Shown: positions 2,248 to 21,625, counted from the stretch's first letter. The stretch: DNA of 64,000 bases from Oopsacas minuta (GCA_024704765.1 JAKMXF010000166.1:1-64000), one strand, 5' to 3'. Program-made: numbers and translations. The notes: generated by a model from the sequence alone, not told the origin.

Positions 2248-3099
2248 TATATTGAGATTCTATTATTTGTTTACTATATATCCATAAAAACTACAAATAC
2301 ATTTACATATGAGAAACTTGAAATTGCGAAATTCGGATTCAGTTTCAGTTTACTTGATTACCCCTATATTTCTGTTGAGCCCATGATAACATATTGAAAC
2401 CCAATCTCTAGCATACTTTTGAATTTTGAAAAGAAATATATGGAAAATTTGAAATATTTTTAATTACCGAAGAGGTGTGAAATATACACTTCATAGAATT
2501 TTCAAATGTTAAATGCACAACTAGATGTTACTACGAGTATACATGCCAAGTTTCGGGTCTTAATCTCCGAAGGTGTGAACAGGAGAGCGAACACATATAG
2601 ACAGATGGATAAATAGATAGATACCTAGGCTAAGAAAGTCAACGGTTTTAGAACTATGCCACTATAGTATAACCGGCACAGTCAAAAAGTAACTCATGTA
2701 AATTATAAATCTTAGAAAACATCATTGTCCTGTTGGCTAAGAATTCGAAGAAAATCAATTTCAAATTCACTCAAAATTTTAGAACAAAAGTTCCAATTAG
2801 CCAGTTTTGGGGAAAATCAGGTGAAGGCCGATTTCATTCAAATTTTTATGGAAAAACGTAGTAGAAGCGAAGTCTATTTGACATCATATTCCATTGTTAA
2901 TGCAATATGATGTCAAATAGTATAGCTTGTAATTTGATTAAACTAAAGTCAAGGGCGATCAATGATTTGTGGCCCGTAGGTTTAAAAGTTTGAGCACACT
3001 TGTACTAGAATCATTGTTTCGATTCCTGCTGGAACTCGCATAGCTGTCTAAGTGCATATTAAGACCCATTAGGATTATATATATCCCTACATTATTCAG

Positions 3100-3192
3100 G
3101 TATGATAAATATTTGAAAGTTACTGTTAACACCAAGCATTTATGTTTGCTGAATTGCTGTTTCCATCTCTGTAAATAATAATATATTTTCAG
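3100..3192 (+). other. Putative 5'UTR intron of the first GIMAP-like gene
   Basis: CAG|GTATGA donor at 3100 and TTTTCAG acceptor at 3192, 6 nt before the ATG at 3199. The 93 nt length is similar to other short introns in the window. Confidence 0.5.
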
Positions 3193-3198
3193 ATTTTG

Positions 3199-4815
3199 AT
3201 GGCAGAAAGGAAGCCTGCTTGGCGAAATTGGGATAATCGTAAAACCTGGCTAAAACGGGCACGTGATGTTACACTAATTCCTCCTAAAAGAGATTTTGAT
3301 CGCACTTTCATACTAATCGGTAAAGTAAATAGCGGTAAAAGCACTTTAGCTAATCTCTTATACGGAATTAAAGATAAAATAACGTTTCGTGTTCACCCAC
3401 ACAAGCAAGCATATTGCACGACAACTGAAATGAGTTGTAAAGAATTTGAGGTAGAGTCATCTATAGTATATGGACGCGTATTCCAAGGAAACGAAAAGCT
3501 AAAGGTTCAAATTATGGACCAACCTGGCTCAAATGATAGTAACTATACTGATCAAGATCGTTGCGATAATATAGTGGAATGTTTAAAGGTGTCTCGAGCT
3601 GAATTGTCTAATACGTTTCTAATTGTTTTCGACATGAGCGGGAAATTTTTTACAATCGAGGATACTATTTCAATCTTGAATTTATCAGAAATACTTTCTA
3701 ATTCAGGATACAAGTTTTTCGAGAATGCTATTTTGGTAGTTACTCATGCCGATCAGTTTGATAATTATCAGGAAAAATTCAGACAAATGCTGGAAATGAA
3801 AGAGTATGCATCAATCAGCCATTTACTGAAACAGATCAATAAGCAACACATATTTATTAATGGTTTAGATATTACCGAAGAAAATCGTAACAACTTACTC
3901 AAAACTCTTTTCCAAATGTCAAAACCTAAATTGAACGTATCAATCACTGGTAACCATGGCTTTCTTGGATCTGAGTTGCGTGAATTGTTACAACTCCCAG
4001 AAGACGACCTTGTAGAAAATGATTCCACAAAATTCGATGTTGAATATTTCTTCAATCCAGATATGAATATTTTTGACCAATTTGATAAATTAACATTGGA
4101 ACAACGTGTCCAAGATGAATTAAAGAAACTCTTCATTGTCAGTAGGGGAATTACTGCCATGGTTGTATTGATTAGCTTAGAAGAAGCTTTTAGTGAAGAG
4201 TTCTATAATTTAATTAATTCAATCCCTGAAACATATTCTATTGGATCTTCCTCTAAGGTTGAAGATAGCGATATTTGGAAATATACCTTCATTGTGTTTC
4301 TCTCACCTGTTTCAGAAAGTAAATCAGTTCTGGAAAATATACAACGAAACACACGTATTAAGAAACTTGTTGCAAGAGTAAACAACAGATACACGTGGGT
4401 AACGAGAGGTATGTCACCAGCTGATTGTCATAATAAGTTAATAGAAATGGTTTTACAAGTGGGTCATGATGCACAAGGAAGAACTCTAATCAATAATCAA
4501 GTTGTGAAACAAATGAACAAGTTTATCTCAGGTCCCAAGTCTCCACAAAATCTTGAGAGAGTAAAGCCACGCACAGTCACTGACCTGAATAAGATGCAAC
4601 AAAGTATTCCTTGTTTCGAAATCCCTAATAGCGACGATTTTCTAATCAGAGCAAACACATTTGATTGGAATAAGCCTACTATCTCATGTATCCTAGGATA
4701 TTTTATTTTGAAGAGACTGAAACCTGAAGCAGCGGAGAGATTCCAAGAAGATTTTCCTGAATCAGAAATATCTAGAGAGCAATTCAGGGAATTCTGCCTT
4801 GCGAACCTGAATTGA
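3199..4815 (+). CDS. AIG1/GIMAP-family GTPase, 538 aa: intact G domain followed by a degenerate AIG1-like domain
   Basis: Domain 1 has G1 GKVNSGKS, G2 TTT, G3 DQPG, conserved box FLIVFD..GKFFT and G4 THAD. Domain 2 keeps GIMAP-like segments (ITAMVVLISLEEAFSEE, WKYTFIVF, KKLVARVNNRY) but lacks GKS and DxxG. CDS is intronless. Confidence 0.9.
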   Translation: MAERKPAWRNWDNRKTWLKRARDVTLIPPKRDFDRTFILIGKVNSGKSTLANLLYGIKDKITFRVHPHKQAYCTTTEMSCKEFEVESSIVYGRVFQGNEKLKVQIMDQPGSNDSNYTDQDRCDNIVECLKVSRAELSNTFLIVFDMSGKFFTIEDTISILNLSEILSNSGYKFFENAILVVTHADQFDNYQEKFRQMLEMKEYASISHLLKQINKQHIFINGLDITEENRNNLLKTLFQMSKPKLNVSITGNHGFLGSELRELLQLPEDDLVENDSTKFDVEYFFNPDMNIFDQFDKLTLEQRVQDELKKLFIVSRGITAMVVLISLEEAFSEEFYNLINSIPETYSIGSSSKVEDSDIWKYTFIVFLSPVSESKSVLENIQRNTRIKKLVARVNNRYTWVTRGMSPADCHNKLIEMVLQVGHDAQGRTLINNQVVKQMNKFISGPKSPQNLERVKPRTVTDLNKMQQSIPCFEIPNSDDFLIRANTFDWNKPTISCILGYFILKRLKPEAAERFQEDFPESEISREQFREFCLANLN

Positions 4816-5201
4816 TAAAGATTATACATACTTCTTAGTACTTTTCCAAAATTAGGTTACTAACAATAAGACCCCTTAGTCTATTGACTTCTCAAAATAT
4901 ATTTTTGTTTATGGATTCTGAATTTCTTTCTTAGTGATATTATATGTATATTTGCACTCTATGATTTCCGTTCTTTGAGTAGAAATTTGATCAATGACCC
5001 CGAGACCAAGACGGCATCTTGGGACCACGAAATTCGAATTGAATTACAAGTACATATCCTTCATGTATTCTATAATCTTTCACTTGACAACTGACAAACA
5101 AACAACTTTTGAGATATGATAGGATCGGTTAATGAAATCGTGATTTAGCTAATTAGTGATATGATAATCTTTCTAACTTTATTTCTTTTTCAAATAATAG
5201 C

Positions 5202-7511
5202 ATGAATAACATCAAATTTGTATTGGTTGGAGATCACAATTGTGGTATGAACTCTTTACGAATGATGTTGGAACAGACTGGTAGCAGTTCTATTAATGAG
5301 GAATGTTTGAAGGGTGAAATATTGGATGCCAAAACCAAGTTTATAAAGTTACTGCAAGACAGATCAAACCACACAGTGTTCCTTATAGTAATTCCAATAA
5401 CATTGAGAGTGCTAAAGGTGCAATGGTTAGATTCGCTGAAGGCTGAATGCAACCATTTCAGGAATGCAATAATTGTATTCACTCATACTAACACGGTTAA
5501 CCAAACTCATGAAAATGACTTATTAGAACAACATGTGAAAGAGATATGTAAGAGTAAAGAGTGGGATTATCTGCTTAGATGTGTTAATGGTCGTTTTGTC
5601 TGTCTAAACTCAATCTCACAAGAATTAGAATACAAACGTAAAGTTGTCAAAGAAATTATCCGAATTTCCAAACCATCTTACACAATCTTGATCCATGGGA
5701 ACAATCATGCAAGTTCTTCAATAATATCAAAAAAATTACAATTATCCGACTGTAATAATGTGATTGAATTGAAAGATATACGAATGAATTTCTATTTCTA
5801 TCCAGATCTTGATCTATTCCAGGGATTACAACAGCCTGATTGTGGAGATTGTATCAGCAATTTGATTGGTAACCGTGTGCACCATGGTCAGGGCATTACT
5901 CTCATTTTACTCTTAGTCAGTCATGAAGAGATATTATCCAGAGACATGAAAGAGATGATAACTGATCTTCCACACAATGAACATTATCGGATGGATCATA
6001 AAACTGATAAGTATTGGTGGAACCACACAAGTGTATTGTTTACATTTGGAGAGAATTCTAATAATTGTCGTGATGAAGTGATGAACTCCATCAAAAGAAA
6101 TGTAAGAATTAACGAGGTGGTGAACAGAGCTGGTGGTAGATATATTTGGATGTCAGATACTACTTCTAAAGAGGATATTGTTAATCAAATCCGAACTCAA
6201 TGTGATAATATGAAAAAGTATCGTAACGGTAGAGAGTTTATTGGCGGACCTACAAAGGACTATCCCATGAAAATGAAAGAAGAAAAGTCAAATATTCCTG
6301 AAGTACAACATGACGGCTTCGGTGGTCATTCTGATATTCTTTTCAATTTTATTTCTTTTTCAAACAACAGCAAGAGTAACACCAAATTTGTATTGGTTGG
6401 AGATCACAATTGTGGCGTGAACTCTTTACGAATGATGTTGGAACAGACTGGTAGCAGTTCTATTAATGAGGAATGTTTGAAGGGTGAAATATTGGATGCT
6501 AAAACTAAGTTTATAAAGTTACTACAAGACAGATCAAATCACACAGTGTTTCTTATAGTAATTCCAATAACATTGATAGTGCTAAAAGTGCAATGGTTAG
6601 ATTCGCTGAAGGCTGAATGCAACAATTTGGCTCTTTCATCTGTTAACCTTTTCAGGAATGCAATAATTGTATTCACTCATACTAACACGGTTAACCAAAC
6701 TCATGAAAATAACTTATTAGAACAACATGTGAAAGAGATGTGTAAGAGTAAAGAGTGGGATTATCTGCTTAGATGTGTTAATGGTCGTTTTGTCTGTCTA
6801 AACTCAATCTTACAAGAATTAGAATACAGACGTAAAGTTGTCAAAGAAATTATTCAATTTTCCAAACCATCTTACACAATCTTGATTCATGGGAACAATC
6901 ATGCAAATTCTTCAATATTATTCACAAAATTACAATTATCCGACCGTAATAATGTGATTGAATTAGAAGATATACGAATGAATTTCTATTCCTATCCAGA
7001 TTTTGATCTATTCCAGGGATTACAACAGCCTGATTGTGGAGATGTTATCAGGAATTTGATTGGTAACCGTGTGTACCATGGTCAGGGCCTCACTCTCATT
7101 TTACTCTTAATCAGTCAGCAAGAGATATTCTCCAGAGGCATGAGAGAGATGATAACTGATCTTCCACACAATGAACATTATCGGATGGACCATAAAACTG
7201 ATAAGTATTGGTGGAACCACACAAGTGTATTGTTTACATTTGGAGAGAATTCTAATAATTTTCGTGATGAAGTGTTAAACTCCATCAAAAGAAATGTAAG
7301 AATTAAAGAGGTGGTGAACAGAGCTGGTGGTAGATATATTTGGATGTCAGATACTACTTCTAAAGAGGATATTGTTAATCAAATCCAAACTCAATGTGAT
7401 AATATGAAAAAGTATCGTAACGGTAGAGAGTTTATTGGCGGACCTACAAAGGACTATCCCATGAAAATGAATAATGCCGGTGGTGGTCATTCTCTCTATA
7501 AATTTGTTTGA
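5202..7511 (+). CDS. GIMAP-like pseudo-GTPase, 769 aa, internally duplicated (A'B'-A'B')
   Basis: Uninterrupted ORF of two ~1170 nt units. Each unit has FVLVGDHNCG[M/V]NS (degenerate P-loop), NAIIVFTHTN, NGRFVCLN, then WWNHTSVLFT and VVNRAGGRYIW, matching both domains of the upstream gene. Confidence 0.85.
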   Translation: MNNIKFVLVGDHNCGMNSLRMMLEQTGSSSINEECLKGEILDAKTKFIKLLQDRSNHTVFLIVIPITLRVLKVQWLDSLKAECNHFRNAIIVFTHTNTVNQTHENDLLEQHVKEICKSKEWDYLLRCVNGRFVCLNSISQELEYKRKVVKEIIRISKPSYTILIHGNNHASSSIISKKLQLSDCNNVIELKDIRMNFYFYPDLDLFQGLQQPDCGDCISNLIGNRVHHGQGITLILLLVSHEEILSRDMKEMITDLPHNEHYRMDHKTDKYWWNHTSVLFTFGENSNNCRDEVMNSIKRNVRINEVVNRAGGRYIWMSDTTSKEDIVNQIRTQCDNMKKYRNGREFIGGPTKDYPMKMKEEKSNIPEVQHDGFGGHSDILFNFISFSNNSKSNTKFVLVGDHNCGVNSLRMMLEQTGSSSINEECLKGEILDAKTKFIKLLQDRSNHTVFLIVIPITLIVLKVQWLDSLKAECNNLALSSVNLFRNAIIVFTHTNTVNQTHENNLLEQHVKEMCKSKEWDYLLRCVNGRFVCLNSILQELEYRRKVVKEIIQFSKPSYTILIHGNNHANSSILFTKLQLSDRNNVIELEDIRMNFYSYPDFDLFQGLQQPDCGDVIRNLIGNRVYHGQGLTLILLLISQQEIFSRGMREMITDLPHNEHYRMDHKTDKYWWNHTSVLFTFGENSNNFRDEVLNSIKRNVRIKEVVNRAGGRYIWMSDTTSKEDIVNQIQTQCDNMKKYRNGREFIGGPTKDYPMKMNNAGGGHSLYKFV

Positions 7512-7619
7512 GTATTCTATTACATTCTTATCTTGTTGTCACATATATCATGAACCATGTAATGTTATGCATGAATATATTTGTTTATTTCATTATATAC
7601 ATCATTTTATAGTTCGAGG

Positions 7620-8110
7620 ATGTTAATATCCTGTACATGAAGGGGGGAGAAATCTGGGGACTACACAGAGCAGGTTACGCGTATGGCGAAGGAAGACCTG
7701 TGGGATACGTTAGTGGCCACACATCACGAGCTCAGTCATGGCGGACGTGTCAGGGTACGAGGTACGAGTATTTCATGAGCCACAACTATCACGTGCTTCG
7801 TGCAATAATTGTCCTCATACGCTTCTGCGGCATTTGCCAAGCCAACAAATGCAGGATATGTGTTTGCTGACGATCTTGATGACGATTCCTACAACTTCAG
7901 TCTACCCCTGCTGATCCGAACACAAGTTACACCTTATTATAACTTTACCTCAGGCCAGTCCGAGCTGATACCCTCTGATTCATACCTCTCACCCCTACCA
8001 CCGGCATCTCCTATTCCCTACGCATCTATCACCTACTTCACTGACCATCCTCTGTGTTCAGTCTGCGCAATAGATGATGGCAACTGCACTGTGAGTTGCA
8101 GTATACAACA
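7620..8110 (+). pseudogene. Decayed integrase H2C2 zinc-binding relic (Ginger/KRBA2-like), catalytic core missing
   Basis: Frameshifted LWDTLVATHHELSHGGR ... RAIIVLIRFCGICQANK resembles the H-x-GHGGR...C-x2-C motif. A Cys-rich tail (CSVC...CTVSC) follows. Boundaries approximate. Confidence 0.5.
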
Positions 8111-8144
8111 TGTCAACTTTGGGATGATGATGGTGTCACAACCA

Positions 8145-8510
8145 GACATTGATGGAGAGGAAACTGAAGCAGAATGGAAATTGTTTCGGCGGATAATTTG
8201 GAGGCAATTCAATCATAGCTCTTGTAGGATGTACTATCGAAATTGATCAATAGGGGAGACATTTCGATTGCATTTCAAACTTACCAAATTTATCTACAAT
8301 AGTAGAGGTTTTACTAGTAACAACAGTCACTATTGAACGTACATTTAGCAATATGAAACTAATAACAACAAGACTCCGCAGCTGGATGGGCGAGGACACA
8401 ATTGAACATACAATGCGGATATGTATTGAAGGCACTGATCACCTAACGAATGATATGTTGGAGGAATTTGTTGATCATTATTAAGGGCAAAAGAACCGCA
8501 GAATAGTACT
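8145..8510 (+). pseudogene. hAT transposase C-terminal dimerization-domain relic (ZNF862-like)
   Basis: DIDGEETEAEWKLFRRII, then after a frameshift LPNLSTIVEVLLVTTVTIERTFSNMKLITTRLRSWMGEDTIEHTMRICIEG (PF05699-like ERxFS motif). Premature stop present. Confidence 0.8.
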
Positions 8511-8885
8511 GAGGCTCAAGCTTAGGGCCTGTGGCATCTTGAGTTGCATTTAACCTGGGTTCAGGGCCGTATTAAGGGGAAGGGGGGCTATGGGTGCTGT
8601 AGCACCCGGGCCCGGGGCCGCGTAGGCATAGTCGTAGCGGGCCTGCAGAAATTTCTCTCTTGTAGATTCGCAAAGAGCCAAACAAAAAGTGCCGCTACAG
8701 TAAGGTATGAGGTTGCACATACTTGATTATACAATACCAGCTAGGGGGTCCCAACAGGGGTGATTACCCCAAATGGAGTAATATGAGGATTTTTGGAAGG
8801 TAATGGGTGCTTCATTAGTTTAAAATTTGTTATCAATAGTTCCACAGTAATTTGAATAGTTGTTATTTGTTTTTAATGGTATATA

Positions 8886-9071
8886 CAGTGGAGTCTCCCA
8901 AAACGGACACTCCGAGACGCGGACAACCCCCTACAACGGACAAACTTTCTGGCACGGATTGAATTTGCCAAGCATGTAATTAATACTTAAGCAGTCTCCG
9001 AGGAGCGGACAATTCTCTACAACTACCAGATCCCATGTCCCCAACGTGTCTGTTATTCGGAGACTCCACTG
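8886..9071 (+). mobile_element. MITE family M1 copy
   Basis: TA-CAGTGGAGTCTCC...GGAGACTCCACTG-TA. Confidence 0.9.
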
Positions 9072-10065
9072 TATTCATAAAAACAACAATAAATATACAT
9101 ATGATAAACTTGAAAATAATGCGAAATTCGGATTCAGCGTACTTAATTACCCCTGGGTAGCCGTTTAGAGCAAGCCTGTACGTATATTTTGAGATTTGGA
9201 TAATTTGTTTACTTTATATATTAATAAAAACAACAATAAATTTCCTTATGATTCATCCCAAAGTGTGAAAATCGGATTCAGCATATTTGATATATTTAGT
9301 GAAGTTTTATTGAATTCTATTTACTTCCTTGATAAACGCGATAAATACATAGTTATGCGACAATTTCATAATTGCATATCGTAAATCCTTTCCTTGACAA
9401 CAGACAAACAAACAGACAATAATTGAGATGTAATAATATAGATTAAACCATAGATGCCCTAAGGATTTCAGTCAAAGATCCTGTTGCATGTCAGAATTGC
9501 TACCACTGTTATATTTCGATTGCACCTCATGATTGCTCATTATGATACAGATAAATAAAAATATGTTTAATCATTACTTTCGAAGATAAAGAGTAAAATT
9601 TATGATCCTCATTACGCTAATTGCTGCTGTTCTATTTTCGAGCTTCTCGTTAACTCACTAATCCCCTGGAATAGGCTATCATATCATAATGCCACTCTTA
9701 ATATATTTTGTGTACCCTTCACATATTCTTGTATACATTTTAAGGTTCTGTGGATCCCAGGTTGGCGGACCTCTTTGGTCCATTTTATGAGGTCCGCGGA
9801 CCCCTGCCAATAAACATAACGAAAACATTTTGGGCCGCGAACCCCAGGTTGAGAACCACTGTATTAGATGGTATTCATCCAAATCGTGAAATTCTTTGTT
9901 GTTGAAGTTCATTGATTATGTAACAATAAAATGTTATACGTAGATAAAAGATTATCGAATATACACAGTCTAAGAAGTAAATGTACATTGATTTAATACA
10001 AGAATACCATAAAATAGGTCACACATTAAATATGAGTTGGGTTTAGAAGACAAAATATATAGGAA

Positions 10066-10480
10066 CTATTTGGGTTTCAACTTCTTCAATTTTCGAGTGT
10101 TTTCTACATTAGACTTCAATGGTAGCGAGGCATTCCTATTTTTAATTTTATTGGATAAGATACAGATTGAAGTAGAGGTCAATAATTTGGCTAATATATC
10201 CCATATTAGTGTACTGCAACTGTTGAGCATAACTCTCCATATATCAGCTTGTTCATTCTCTAAAACTGTAATTGTTAAGTGGGTGAGAATCTTTTTAGAT
10301 GGACCAGTAACAAAACTACCGAGTAAGCCTGGTTGATTCTCAATAGCAGAGTACATTTTACACAATGTAATAACTGCGCTGATCACACAACTACTTGGCC
10401 ATTTTAGTGAGCCGCGGTCGATTATCTGAATTAGCCTATATTTAGAATCTGAAGGCTCTTCAATTTCCATTTATTTATAT
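10066..10480 (-). pseudogene. P-element/THAP9-like transposase C-terminal exon relic
   Basis: LIQIIDRGSLKWPS resembles the DRGGLxYPS motif, and the ORF ends in a basic tail (RKLKKLK). Preceded by a CTTTCACAG acceptor, with an in-frame stop just after it. Confidence 0.5.
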
Positions 10481-10540
10481 TCTGTGAAAGGTGAGAGACA
10501 AGATTAACATTTGTCAGAATGTTTGTAATAAACATAAACT

Positions 10541-11249
10541 GAGTAACCGGTAATCAAGGAGGGTGACTGGACTCACTGGAGTAATTGAGTACTTAATTCA
10601 ACTCCGGAAAAATCTTGAATATCAGAATGATAAGTTTCAAGGTTGAAAGAAACAGGAGAGTCTTGGTCACAAGTTGATGAGCATGATTCTAAGAAGTTCT
10701 TTAGTTGAGATAGTCTCTTCTGCAGGCTTTTCTGAAAATAATTCAAGATTCCGAGCTATAAGCCATGCGACTTCCAAGCTTGCTCTTAAGGAGTCCCGCC
10801 TCTGTTTTTTCACTTGACTTCCCTTATGGGCGAAAACTTCCTTTGGCATGTCCGCTAGTTCAAGGTGTTTGTTGCGCAGATGCTTCTGAAGCTGAGATGA
10901 TTTGAGGGACTCCGGACACAGCACAGCCAGACAGATGACGCACTGCGGCTTTATGACTCCTTTATCGGTTGTTTGTGATGAAGCCATACTCCAAGAATTC
11001 GTCTTTGAATACACGCTTTCTAGAATTTCTCATGCTGCAAAAGGAGATTAGAAGTGAAAATTGAGCAAGATAAATCAATACACACGAATTGATAAAAATT
11101 ATTGTTACTATTATTATAATATTTATTACAGCAATTTTGAATTGGCTGGACTCATTTTCTAGGCACAAAGTCCCGTTCATACTATTTTATTCCGAATAAG
11201 TCTCATTACCCCCAGTAAACCTGAAATTACCCCTGATTACCGACCACTG
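10541..11249 (-). mobile_element. Internally deleted Buster/Charlie-type hAT element carrying a BED zinc finger
   Basis: ATG at 11033 gives MRNSRKRVFKDEFLEYGF(stop)...KPQCVICLAVLCPESLKSSQLQKHLRNKH...SLRASLEVAWLIAR (ZBED5/SCAND3-like). Degenerate TIR pair CAGTGGTCGGTAATCAGGG / GAGTAACCGGTAATCAAGG. Confidence 0.75.
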
Positions 11250-11257
11250 CCGTAAAT

Positions 11258-11339
11258 CATTGGTTCTAAACCTTTTTTCCCCCGCGGACCTCTTTAGTTC
11301 ATTTTATGGTGTCCGTGGACCCCAGATTGAGAACCACTG
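11258..11339. mobile_element. 82 bp hAT MITE with a perfect 8 bp TSD
   Basis: TIR CA(T/G)TGGTTCT..A, and CCGTAAAT on both flanks (11250-11257, 11340-11347). A related partial copy ends at 9861. Confidence 0.9.
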
Positions 11340-11665
11340 CCGTAAATGTCCTTTTGAAGCAATTTCATAAAAGTTCCATATGATGTTCCTAATGTAAATA
11401 CAATCTTTCAAAAGATGGTATTAAATCATTGAATGAAAAAATTTACGCACAAAGTTCAAATTGATCAACTTCGAACCCGAAACAGATTCCAATTCTGATT
11501 TATACTATACTTCTAGCGAGTATATTCACATCGTGATATTTCATTTAGAATAATTTATCGGTAATTGGAAACTAAGCTCAATCTAATTCTCAAAATACCT
11601 AAATGTGTTCCTATCTTAGCTTAGCTATTCCATATCATTATTATGTGTAACGTGATACAAAATAC

Positions 11666-12674
11666 ATTAAAGCCTAATTACTTATAGCCCTGCTATTTAT
11701 TGAGATTTATTCTTTCTTAGTTTCACAGAGAGATTATCGATAATATTTGTTAGTTTGAATTATATTCTTAAACAACAAGCAGGTTACTTATTTTCTATTC
11801 TTTGATATTTATTTCACAAATACTTATTTTAGTATATTCTAGTTACTTATATATTACATCAATTGTTATTTCCCTCAAATTTGTATTTCTATTAATCGAC
11901 GTGACAAGAGTTTAGTAATGAAATTGCTTGTGCACGCTGTCCTGTCCAAGGAATTCTAGTAGTGGATCCAAGAATTCTTGAATGAGGGATAATCATCCAG
12001 CTGGTAGTTTGGTTCCCTGCAATCCTGCAGTTGCAACCTCGTATGCAACATTAATAGATTAAACCCTTGTTTCTTGCAATGTACCTTTACAATGTAACGA
12101 TTGTAACAAATACGTTGTCAGGGTTGGAGCATATAAGGATATAAAATAATCATATTATAGCCAATCATTTAAACACTAGACCACTCTAGTCACGTATAGA
12201 CTACAGAGATGGAACCGGTCAAGGTTGACCGGGCGAGCGAGATGGTTAATGGTTATAGAATGAACATTTTACCTTAGGTACTTCAATTATTATTGCATTC
12301 TTGGTATTTTAATTATTTTTGAATCGTAACTATTCTTTAGCACTATTTTACTGGTCCGGCTACACTTATAGTGGGACAGTATTGAAATGACTGCCTTTAT
12401 ATTTTTAGTGCAGTTCGTAAAAGGAGTTGCCTTAATGGCATGGATGATGTGCGGCGTCCATCCGTCCGTGCGCAGCCGTGCGAAATCTAATAGTTCAATT
12501 ATGAAACATGCAAATTGGCATACATATACATTTGAGTTGGAGAATTGCACATCGGGTATGAATTATTTTCTAAAGTGAATATTTCACACCTTTTGGTGAG
12601 TAATCAGATTTTCACACCTTTATATGTAGAATACAAAAGCAAGCTAGAGATTAGGTTTCAGAATGTTGACAGGG
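11666..12674. repeat. ~1 kb direct repeat, copy B, ending exactly at an N
   Basis: Matches 1-1008 up to GTTGACAGGG. The next base (12675) is N and the similarity stops there. Confidence 0.95.
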
Positions 12675-13144: not shown

Positions 13145-14503
13145 TTCTCCTTTAGTACTTAAGGAGTTTAAGGGATAATGTATGATTTCACTGTATGGTT
13201 TTTAAGTTACATGAATATCTCATATTGAGAATACTTACAGATTGTTCATACACAAGTTATATTATAATATTTTCATTACCATCTCTACCACAGACATATA
13301 CAAATTATTCGGGGCACGCTCTTAGCGCTCCTCCTCAAATTATATTACGTTTAATCAGTAAATTTGATTATAGTTTAGGGAAAGATACTCAATTTCCACG
13401 CTCCTAAATATGATTTCATCAAAATCATACGTCTAGAGATGCGTCCTACGCTCCTAGACAATTCCTTGATCTCTACATAATTTCAATTGTTCAAGAATTC
13501 TCAAAGATAACTACCTTCCTAACTTTTCACAAATGAGAATTGATCGATTATCTTCTAATCTTAGGAGGGCAGGCATTCAGTGTCAATCACTTTTGAATCG
13601 ATTACCCGCACTAAATTTTATTCAATTGGTTCTGTTTTAAGGAAGAAATCAGCATTAAAGTAGGCCCCTTCAGGAACCAATGAGTACGTACTACCCGAGT
13701 ATACGTCTTATCTGAGCTCTACTGACTACTGTATATGCTATTGATTGTATCCTAAGTTTAATTTGTACAATTCTTTAGATTAAATCAGTATTTTCATGAT
13801 TGGATTTTTGTTTAGGGAAATGGAGTGTACGTTTTGTTTCTTTCAACGGACTATTACTTAAGATTTCTCTTTGTTTTTCAAGTCTCTCTACTCCTGTCTC
13901 TAATTATTTTCAAGATATTTCAATGGAAAGTTTCAATAAGTCTATCTATCCAAGCACACAAGAGACAAGATATTGTATGAAGTTGAAGAAATAATTGTTT
14001 ATTTGAAATATTTATTGTTACACTCTATTGAACTATCAAATTTTCACTCGAGAAGTTACACAAATGTTCTTATATCTTCCACATTCTATTAGTATCCAGG
14101 ACTCTACTCTACCAGATTGAACCACAATTATAAATGATATATCAGCCACTACTTCAAATTCTTTGAGGTTGGTTCTTAACTTCTCTTACGGCTATTAATG
14201 TACAGTAGTCAGTAGGCATCGGATATTTAGAACGGTTATAACATTGCAAGGAAAATCCAGCTGTACTACATAATTAATGGAAGTTAATCAATTATTTTAT
14301 CAATTCAAATTTGGTCATAGGATCCCGTCGGCCGTCCGTCGTAGAATTGTCATTCTTAAAATACGATCATTTATTTACTTATAATTGCACATTATGTATT
14401 TATCCCCAACTTAATTCCTGCAATTATCCATTATCAATGCGAAAGTAATTACGTATTCTAATTAAGAGGACTTGACTTTGGTAAGGGTGTTCGCCTATTA
14501 GCT

Positions 14504-20119: not shown

Positions 20120-20324
20120 TATGAGGAATTGATTTAGACTTTAAGAGTACTTAGCAAATAAAACACAGTAGAACCTCACAAAGTAGGGTATTGGTCAGAA
20201 GTTGGTTTTGGGGTTCATCGATGGAAATTTCGTCCAAATTCAATTAGAAATTCCCAATTTGGTGTGCTTAGTCTTTCAAATGCTTCCAGGACACCTCATC
20301 TTGTATTTTTGGAGGTTCTGTATA

Positions 20325-20510
20325 CAGTGGAGTCTCCCAAAACGGACACTCTGAGAAGCGGACAACCCCTTTCAACAGTCAAACCTTCTGGCACGGATTG
20401 AATTTGCCAAGCATGTAATTAATACTTAAGCAGTCTCCAAGGAGCGGACAATTCTCTACAACGGACAGATATCATGTCCCCAACGTGTCTGTTATTCGGA
20501 GACTCCACTG
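20325..20510 (+). mobile_element. MITE family M1 copy (partial 3' copy also at ~20690-20771)
   Basis: CAGTGGAGTCTCC...GGAGACTCCACTG with the same internal sequence as 8886-9071. Confidence 0.9.
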
Positions 20511-21625
20511 TTTATAGAGCATAAAGCAATGCCAATATGCTTACATTACTCATCAGTCATCACTCAATATTATATTAATCCTCATCACAGTATAATAAAA
20601 CTTGTGACTTCTCCCGTAACTATTCAACTTTAGTACATGTAAAACTGCATTCAAAATGATACATATTAGGTGTTTTGATAAAAAGATGGACCAGTCTTCG
20701 AGAAGCGGACAATTCTATACAATGGACAGAAGCCATGTCACCAACGTGTCTGTTATTCGGAGACTCCACTGTATACCAATATCAACCTGTAAATCCTAAC
20801 TATATACAGACAGTGCGACCTGGTAACAACAGCCACCCAAAGAACAAGTCATATATCATAACTCTTGCTATTAGTGTTTGGGTAGACTTTTGTTTGGAAT
20901 ATATTCCCTGAGTCATATAAATCAGATTTGTACTAGACTTGTCAATGACCCACAAACATAGTGTTTTGTTAGTTCTCCCGAAGCATGAAAATACGAACAC
21001 GCTATCTGTCACCTGGAGGAACTTCCTATAATTCAGATTGTATCAGGGTGTCATCTGCTCGTGGTTAGAAGCTGAGAGTCATGGGATAGAGCTTAAACTT
21101 TTACGATCTACTAAGTAGGATTGGCCCAAAATCTCAAATTGAATATTCTATCCTAACCAGTTTCAGGCGGTTATATTGAATCAGAACCAAATCTTCAGTC
21201 TCTTTTTCTGTTATAACTACTTCAGATGTAACCTGACTTGATAAGTTAGTATAATAAATATTCCTAATTCACAAAGTAAATAAGATTAATAGAGTGGAAG
21301 CGCCTCACCATGAATAGTAGCTGAGCGAATATAAACTTGTATCAGTATTGAAATGGATAAGAACTAGATAATCACATGCCAACTGTCAGAGTTTATCTAG
21401 GAGAGCAATCCCCTCTAACGTACACGTGCTTCTGTGGCGTTGAAAGTGAAGTATTGGACCTAGAAGCCCGAAAACCCCCCACGCCACTGGGGATGATTAC
21501 CAGAGGGGCTACTATTCAAGCAAATCCGGTACTTTTGCTAATAATAAGGCAGATTGTTTAATAATAGGTACAGGAATTATTTAGTAATGACAACATTTTA
21601 CAAATTAAACACAAGTACAAGAAAT

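Follow-up and report, generated by a model that had tools for sequence, protein, structure and literature searches.

Can a gene pair that carries one canonical GTPase domain beside five lobes lacking the P-loop lysine be a working unit, and how did it arise? The question is raised by two neighbouring genes of the glass sponge Oopsacas minuta (GCA_024704765.1, JAKMXF010000166.1). They lie in the first 64 kb of its contig C166, a stretch of 64,000 nucleotides (nt) referred to here as the window. Gene 1 (3199-4815, + strand), recognized by its open reading frame (ORF), its Pfam AIG1 match and its homologues, encodes 538 amino acids from its ATG in a single exon; gene 2 (5202-7511, + strand) is a 769-amino-acid ORF. 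An earlier description, made from the DNA without database searches (the sequence-only reading), had proposed two co-oriented, intronless AIG1/GIMAP-like neighbours 386 bp apart in an early-branching animal. The layout and the host agree with this description: the two ORFs lie on the same strand with 386 nt between them and contain zero stops, and no intron-like joints were present in the contigs of four sequencing runs of one sample that we aligned to 2500-8400. Our analysis supports an enzyme-plus-pseudoenzyme architecture that is real and conserved in two protein forms of a glass-sponge family, termed type 1 and type 2, while gene 2 itself is a young, derived and possibly decaying variant. 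We consider the explanation developed below probable as a whole; its structural and evolutionary part is very probably correct and its functional part is tentative.

The Pfam AIG1 model (PF04548) matched gene 1 at residues 36-239 (E 9e-15) and the whole of gene 2 in three stretches (E 2.3e-9), and residues 105-414 of gene 1 could be aligned, at 23-24% identity (E ~1e-24), to two segments of gene 2, residues 22-330 and 412-728. Scanning the proteins of the locus against NCBIfam returned generic GTPase matches only, all below threshold. Domain A of gene 1 (3286-3927, + strand; residues ~30-243) scored 55 bits within the whole protein and 47.1 bits as a separate piece (E 2.3e-12), with the Pfam gathering threshold for PF04548 at 27 bits. 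It contains the P-loop GKVNSGKS (3319-3342), the switch I residue Thr75, DQPG at 107-110 and THAD at 182-185; in 18 type 1 proteins GKxxxGKST, Thr75, DxPG (107-110) and (T/S)HxD (182-185) are invariant or more than 90% conserved. When an A-domain profile was compared with the PDB, the closest solved relatives were GIMAP4, GIMAP7 and GIMAP5 (E 5e-8 to 9e-7). Judged by every available sequence criterion, domain A is predicted to be a competent AIG1 G domain. HMMER aligned its segment TFLIVFDMSGKFFTIED to the conserved box, a hallmark of GIMAPs, that lies between G3 and G4 in GIMAP4 and GIMAP7, but domain A lacks the PGPH part; whether Lys or Arg occupies the catalytic-arginine position hinges on an alignment shift of one residue. 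A Kyte-Doolittle check found no hydrophobic tail in gene 1, whose product is predicted to be soluble.

Gene 1 ends in a C-terminal tail (4495-4812, + strand; residues 433-538) consisting of a disordered linker and three helices, modelled by AlphaFold2 with predicted local distance difference test (pLDDT) values of 30-40 for the linker and ~70 for the helices. The tail is conserved in type 1 proteins with the pattern WNK...ISxILAYF...PEA...ISKEDFKxFC, and it gave no Pfam match and no usable Atlas match, resembling no known family or fold. An EF-hand considered for its last helices was dropped, the loop being off the canonical spacing.

Between domain A and the tail lies domain B (3928-4494, + strand; residues 244-432), in which ITGNHGFLGS replaces the P-loop and no lysine is found. 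Its counterparts in gene 2 are the B' domain of unit 1 (5673-6251, + strand; residues 158-350), with HGNNHASSS and a BLAST match to B of 1e-13, and that of unit 2 (6867-7445, + strand; residues 556-748), 89% identical to the first by BLAST. Across 31 sequences of B-type domains the P-loop position reads (T/H/Y)GN(N/H)xxxS, always without lysine, and the invariant residues are two Gly, a Leu, a Pro, a Trp and a Phe. Taken singly B had no Pfam match, and neither a B profile nor a type 2/3 profile found anything meaningful among PDB sequences. An AlphaFold2 model of B plus the tail, built on a 31-row alignment, reached pLDDT values of 78-96 over most of B and showed the strand and helix order of a Ras-like G domain. 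The top 19 Foldseek matches of the B model were all GIMAP chains (GIMAP7, 2, 1 and 5; from 2.1e-8), and VIA-align placed nine of nine GIMAP entries at Z 14.1-17.5, with a root-mean-square deviation of 2.6-4.7 Å over 157-200 residues; next came Toc33 at Z 12.3 and generic GTPases at 11-12. In a model of A'B', which is of lower confidence (pLDDT 63.7), B' (residues 158-350) was best matched by GIMAP2, 7, 1, 5 and 4 at Z 12.0-14.9, the next match reaching 11.2.

An exhaustive search with the B profile retrieved 200 proteins at E up to 1e-3. The best 39 of these (E up to 1e-30) comprised family members, many of them stand-alone B proteins, plus one fish multi-AIG1 protein; weaker matches (1e-45 to 1e-6) were teleost GIMAP8-like multi-AIG1 proteins aligned on the C-terminal half of the profile. 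Because the fold match is joined by this sequence-profile link to the fish multi-AIG1 proteins, we infer that B is an AIG1 derivative, and B and B' are both GIMAP-type pseudo-G folds as modelled.

The remaining lobes of gene 2 are truncated G-like domains. A' of unit 1 (5202-5672, + strand; residues 1-157) carries GDHNCGMNS and no DxxG, has THTN at G4 and matched A by BLAST at 6e-5, while A' of unit 2 (6372-6866, + strand; residues 391-555) carries GDHNCGVNS and retains eight codons, NLALSSVN, that are gone from unit 1. Between helix 1 and the core strand the gene 2 A' is ~50 residues shorter than A, and DxxG is missing. This is a feature of type 2 generally, whose A' domains are without ~20-50 residues; in A and type 3 these contain strand 3 and DxxG. 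The P-loop lysine is absent in all type 2 proteins of all species (GDHNCGM/V, GNENSGI, GDVNSGI, GDENSGS and GDNNSGM). Residues 1-157 of the model matched the G domain of the translation factor aIF2-gamma (Z 9.6), and the tandem-G protein EhRabX3 (5c1t_A) spanned both lobes of A'B' (residues 4-342, Z 10.8).

The sequence-only reading had seen in gene 1 an intact AIG1 domain A with a degenerate B and in gene 2 an A'B'A'B' arrangement that stays open for 769 codons with GDHNCG[M/V]NS P-loops, and had counted one domain with all G motifs and five without; the ORF translations, motif inspection and the Pfam, profile and structural matches to AIG1/GIMAP bear this out. It had also expected G-like folds for the degenerate lobes, and in the models B and B' are of GIMAP type and A' is a truncated G-like fold. 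Its suggestion that PF04548 be run on each of the six domains held for A, which lies above threshold; A' and B' singly scored 12.6-15.7 bits, with E of 0.01-0.08, and aligned to nothing but the C-terminal half of the model, and for B, A' and B' structure and the family profile were needed. By the Pfam criterion these three appear to be fold derivatives outside AIG1 membership. They have the motif features of pseudoGTPases, a G-like fold that has lost the P-loop Lys/Ser and DxxG, and are by their motifs presumably nucleotide-dead. Since B-type domains escape Pfam, many genes of the family are annotated 'hypothetical'.

Both genes belong to a larger, fast-evolving family. Gene 1 has 14 full-length homologues in other ENA assemblies (45-54% identity) and the gene 2 unit has three (45-46%). 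In the O. minuta genome, gene 1 has at least 23 matches and the gene 2 unit at least 21; a six-frame comparison with PF04548 gave at least 39. Type 1 proteins have the order A-B-tail in 500-540 residues and are predicted to be soluble. Type 2 proteins (426-455 residues) consist of A' and B' followed by a hydrophobic C-terminal tail of 40-50 residues with Kyte-Doolittle (KD19) maxima of 2.9-3.7. In type 3 a short A'' with GKS, GKQ or VKS precedes B'', and the tail is weakly hydrophobic (Kyte-Doolittle maxima 1.7-2.1). Stand-alone B proteins have 190-300 residues, several with hydrophobic tails. In-frame fusion of neighbouring genes recurs in the family: single ORFs join type 1 to B' (723-730 residues; P0010, P0012-P0014; L027 4318-6489, in related arrays), and one of 963 residues (L026 16043-18934) fuses two whole type 1 units (AB-AB).

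Outside the A-B family, O. minuta has more canonical AIG1 loci on C321, C343, C365, C110, C277, C114, C66 and C144 (best PF04548 E 2e-27), some of them in ORFs of 800-1200 residues. One type 1 protein, LOD99_16054 (C133:183985-186300), has 780 residues and ends in a long run of short repeats of the type YDTPLIS / EDTPLIP.

In three other assemblies the homologues form long tandem arrays just upstream of COX5A. As the COX5A of one array-bearing assembly is 85% identical to that of O. minuta, these assemblies probably come from related glass sponges. We considered the window as a syntenic copy of these arrays and rejected the idea; the window has no COX5A, and the O. minuta COX5A lies on contig C133. 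In a maximum-likelihood tree of B domains, a type 1 clade separated from a type 2/3 clade (97/94 each), and both hold O. minuta and other species. Gene 1 grouped as sister (100/99) to the type 1 genes from the other assemblies, and both units of gene 2 fell within the type 2 clade (99/98), beside the O. minuta copy on C23. With O. minuta and other species present in each clade, type 2 without its lysine is an old and conserved design. The split between A-B and A'B' predates these species, and only the four-lobed, anchorless form of gene 2 is young.

That form has a simple history, which the sequence-only reading had missed: A'B'A'B' is a young internal duplication of one A'B' unit and no old four-domain design. 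Identity between the two halves is 84% at the protein level and 93% at the DNA level. One copy of the repeat unit occupies 5162-6331 and the other 6332 to ~7497; the unit measures 1170 nt or 390 codons (spacing 1170/1194 in the repeat families), begins 40 nt upstream of the ATG at 5202 and ends just before the stop. At the duplication junction (6332-6374, + strand), evident from comparison of 5162-5210 with 6332-6380, the 40 nt of the former 5' leader are translated in frame. Later, the 24 nt for NLALSSVN, kept by all relatives, dropped out of unit 1, and unit 2 became shorter by a net 33 nt close to its end. In the nearest paralogue, whose 3' part opens contig C45, YPMKMKEEK is followed by a hydrophobic anchor, and both gene 2 units diverge there. 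DNA alignment with this anchored paralogue located a remnant of anchor-coding sequence (7512-7560, + strand) behind the gene 2 stop codon. A type 2 copy at the end of C116 (L016) overlaps the anchored 3' part at the start of C45 (L019) identically over 33 codons, and the two contigs probably join there.

Gene 2 thus descends from a type 2 gene with A', B' and a C-terminal hydrophobic anchor, probably in the order of anchor loss, next in-frame internal duplication of 1170 nt and finally ~7% DNA divergence of the copies. It lacks the tail that marks the type 2 subfamily (no hydrophobic tail by KD19) and is an atypical, derived member that has lost the anchor and the G4 Asp and is internally duplicated. 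The locus as a whole is very probably one cassette of a birth-and-death AIG1/GIMAP-derived family present in several glass-sponge assemblies, in which gene 1 fuses a nucleotide-competent A to a same-fold copy B that lacks the P-loop lysine and other G motifs, with a helical tail after it.

Is gene 2 still maintained? It could instead be a dying gene, an anchorless chimeric duplicate drifting neutrally whose long ORF is a short-lived accident and which has no function with gene 1. Between its halves, the ratio of non-synonymous to synonymous substitution rates (dN/dS, omega) was 0.63 (NG86), 0.87 (YN00) or 1.49 (maximum likelihood), and relative to the copies on C116, C183 and C45 it was 0.65-1.24, compared with ~0.3 relative to the C23 paralogue. 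Orthologue pairs in the family gave 0.11-0.37, and the lysine-less A'B' proteins are kept across species by purifying selection (omega ~0.3). For young tandem copies in other parts of the family, type 1 genes with perfect G motifs among them, the values were 0.34-0.86, so that gene 2 stands at or slightly above the upper range of the family for young copies. Decay does occur among its relatives: in a related array, for instance, the type 2 copies at L026 5431-6711 and 14570-15876 are each split in two ORFs, and that on C362 contains a TGA.

Against neutral drift, similar omega values are found in intact type 1 young paralogues, and the 769 codons have no stop or frameshift. The 47 substitutions since the duplication should have produced 2.1-2.4 stops and produced 0 (P = 0.09-0.13), and each of the three length changes (indels of 24 and 33 nt, a duplication of 1170 nt) is a multiple of three. 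In run X1, one of the four aligned sequencing runs, summed contig depth was 8,600-68,000 over gene 1, 2,400-12,000 over gene 2, including both of its halves, and 39-820 over the flanks and the intergenic stretch; single contigs had depths of ~800-2100 inside the ORFs vs 41-61 outside, with edges at the ORF ends. Depth over 2500-8400 was flat in the three other runs of the same sample. The index of sequencing runs listed no RNA run for O. minuta. The X1 profile is suggestive of a cDNA library and of two separate transcripts. The check on dN/dS and expression proposed in the sequence-only reading thus came out on both sides, with dN/dS near 1 among recent copies and, on the other hand, a kept frame and RNA-like depth in one run.

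Several observations weigh against a maintained gene 2 and, in part, against our reading of the locus. The maximum-likelihood omega of the halves exceeds 1. The membrane anchor is missing, its remnant lying behind the stop at 7511; the former start codon of unit 2 is AAG (6372-6374); and G4 is THTN in both halves, Asp having become Asn, where orthologues and closest paralogues keep THxD. Forty of ~160 positions invariant in other type 2 proteins are altered, and a hand count over shared columns gave 28 changed invariant sites for gene 2 vs 20 for its closest paralogues; this leave-one-out test is unbalanced because three orthologues are closely related, and we use it qualitatively only. The frame-keeping figures carry less weight than they might, since picking a locus for its long ORF brings an ascertainment bias, and X1 is of unrecorded kind, contig depth being a poor measure of expression. 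For domain B, hhalign of the A profile with the B profile gave E 0.063, not significant though collinear. Nucleotide binding, hydrolysis, dimerization, localization and immune induction are putative only. Weighing both sides, we think it unlikely, though by no means far-fetched, that gene 2 is simply dying.

The sequence-only reading had gone further and joined the gene 1 enzyme and the gene 2 pseudoenzyme, as decoy, scaffold or regulator, in a dedicated interacting innate-immunity module. In the three related arrays, type 1 genes are indeed interleaved with type 2 or stand-alone B genes, and single ORFs fuse type 1 to B'. The pairing also recurs on O. minuta contig C183 (L029), where a 140-nt fragment at 936-1075 matches the P-loop region of gene 1 at 91% identity and is followed, 5.7 kb downstream, by a type 2 copy (6823-7680) that is 88-92% identical to gene 2 and runs off the contig end; the C183 pair is a decayed duplicate of the two-gene cassette. 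Both genes are seemingly transcribed in run X1, and the action of GIMAP7 on GIMAP2 offers a vertebrate precedent (PMC8201404). However, adjacency is expected without any coupling because the two genes are tandemly arrayed paralogues, and tandem duplication alone yields both adjacency and cassette copying. O. minuta type 2 genes also lie beside type 3 instead of type 1 (C23, C116 and C362), gene 2 of the window is the derived anchorless form and not the conserved one, and the immune role is argued by analogy only. A functional pairing of the two genes and a role in immunity are hypotheses, the latter by analogy with GIMAPs and plant AIG1, and a dedicated module strikes us as rather doubtful.

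It is highly improbable that misassembly near a contig end made the A'B'A'B' ORF by joining two alleles or tandem genes: the window does start at base 1 of C166 and family members sit at the ends of C116, C183, C45 and C119, as if arrays break the assembly, but the junction sequence is covered in four of four runs, an X1 contig (6245-6359) crosses it with zero mismatches, if with only 28 nt on the far side, the junction is biologically logical in having a leader and a mutated ATG, and with 7% DNA divergence between its halves, besides indels of 24 and 33 nt, gene 2 is no duplicated read-through.

The gene pair is bracketed by a direct repeat of ~1009 nt, 1-1008 being 98.4% identical to 11666-12674 (blastn); the real repeat may be longer because its first copy is cut by the contig start. 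The pair may be part of a larger segmental duplication or of an assembly-breaking array. Elsewhere in the window we noted an interspersed repeat of ~190 nt, 88-93% identical among copies at 2058-2256, 8882-9074, 20320-20519 and more, and a dispersed repeat at 9157-9445 with copies at 14503, 39374 and 63026. Both are probably small transposable elements.

Returning to the reading we prefer, a birth-and-death family whose type 1 and type 2 forms combine competent and lysine-less lobes, a function can be sketched by analogy with GIMAPs. Domain A would bind GTP and dimerize, with B built in beside it as a docking lobe or non-catalytic partner. For type 1 proteins, nucleotide-dead scaffolds or regulators at membranes could be provided by the anchored type 2 and the stand-alone B proteins, and the anchorless four-lobed product of gene 2 would be a soluble scaffold or decoy, or that of a young gene under relaxed constraint. 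More speculatively, and with the expectation that it is considerably more apt to fail than to hold, glass sponges may have independently evolved a division of labour like that of GIMAP7 and GIMAP2 and carried it to its extreme. Soluble type 1 proteins would supply the sole GTP site and dock, via interfaces of G-domain type, on tail-anchored nucleotide-dead lobes (type 2, type 3 and stand-alone B) of organelle membranes; the fast-diversifying dead lobes would form a recognition or scaffold layer of cell-autonomous defence, with anchorless gene 2-like forms as soluble regulators or decoys. Whatever its role, the family separates functions naturally, with one lobe holding a GTP site, many having the GIMAP fold only, and soluble, fused and tail-anchored forms. 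Which roles of G-domain dimers need hydrolysis and which need a surface only becomes directly testable.

How does this family compare with known systems? Among relatives beyond the GIMAPs, Toc33/34/159 belong to a related branch of the same GTPase clade, are tail-anchored, act as dimers and provide the next-best structural match to B (Z ~12). In contrast to the sponge lobes, they are plant plastid proteins with intact G motifs, and they score clearly lower than GIMAPs. Degenerate G domains beside active ones have a precedent in EhRabX3, in which only the N-terminal lobe binds GTP and the degenerate G fold is a built-in partner; further pseudoGTPase domains are pG1/pG2 of p190RhoGAP and CENP-M. 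These belong to Rab, Rho-regulator or kinetochore branches, and the glass-sponge lobes add an AIG1-derived branch to the known pseudoGTPases. Within the literature collection searched, 'pseudoGTPase' and 'GIMAP' occurred together in nothing except a septin-evolution preprint.

Several AIG1 domains per chain, arisen by tandem duplication, also occur in GIMAP8 and in teleost and mollusc multi-AIG1 proteins, and the B profile finds the fish ones. For GIMAP8, three domains with the potential to bind GTP are described (PMC4201521). Fish proteins retrieved with the B profile carry five to seven GxxxxGK[ST] P-loops each (seen in four), whereas sponge gene 1 has one and gene 2 none, and only the first domain of type 1 carries it.

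Vertebrate GIMAPs comprise soluble members (GIMAP4/6/7) and C-terminally anchored ones (GIMAP1/2/3/5); soluble GIMAP7 dimerizes with membrane-bound GIMAP2 and stimulates its GTP hydrolysis, and the mechanism of GIMAP/AIG1 GTPases has yet to be clarified, mammals included (PMC8201404). Sponges yielded no GIMAPs in older surveys (PMC8857920), and we found no literature linking Oopsacas minuta with GIMAP. Domain A is a member of the family by Pfam and motifs, and B and B' have GIMAP as their best structural match. Sequence identity to GIMAPs is low, at 13-17%. The sponge family is likewise split into soluble and C-terminally anchored proteins, which places the dichotomy, whether shared or evolved a second time, in one of the animal lineages that branched off earliest. 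The hydrophobic tail of sponge type 2, long and of double length, recalls the double hydrophobic segment of GIMAP2, a resemblance only. Unlike vertebrate GIMAPs, all of whose G domains are described as GTPase domains, five of six lobes here are without the P-loop lysine; the anchored partners are nucleotide-dead by motif rather than slow hydrolases, and the active domain is covalently fused to a dead one.

A parallel comes from another glass sponge. The Aphrocallistes vastus genome paper reported an expansion of 75 AIG1 genes, mostly single-exon, 50 of them forming a tandem series whose scaffold is syntenic with O. minuta scaffold 133 (PMC10282587). The genes are of the same kind: single-exon AIG1-domain genes stand in tandem clusters in both, and the counterpart of the A. 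vastus block on scaffold 022 is O. minuta scaffold 133, on which we found COX5A-linked type 1 genes. That paper describes AIG1 domains only, and no A-B architecture, lysine-less domains, anchored forms or the C166 locus. The AIG1 expansion in glass sponges is thus already published, and it is the A-B/A'B' architecture that is new here.

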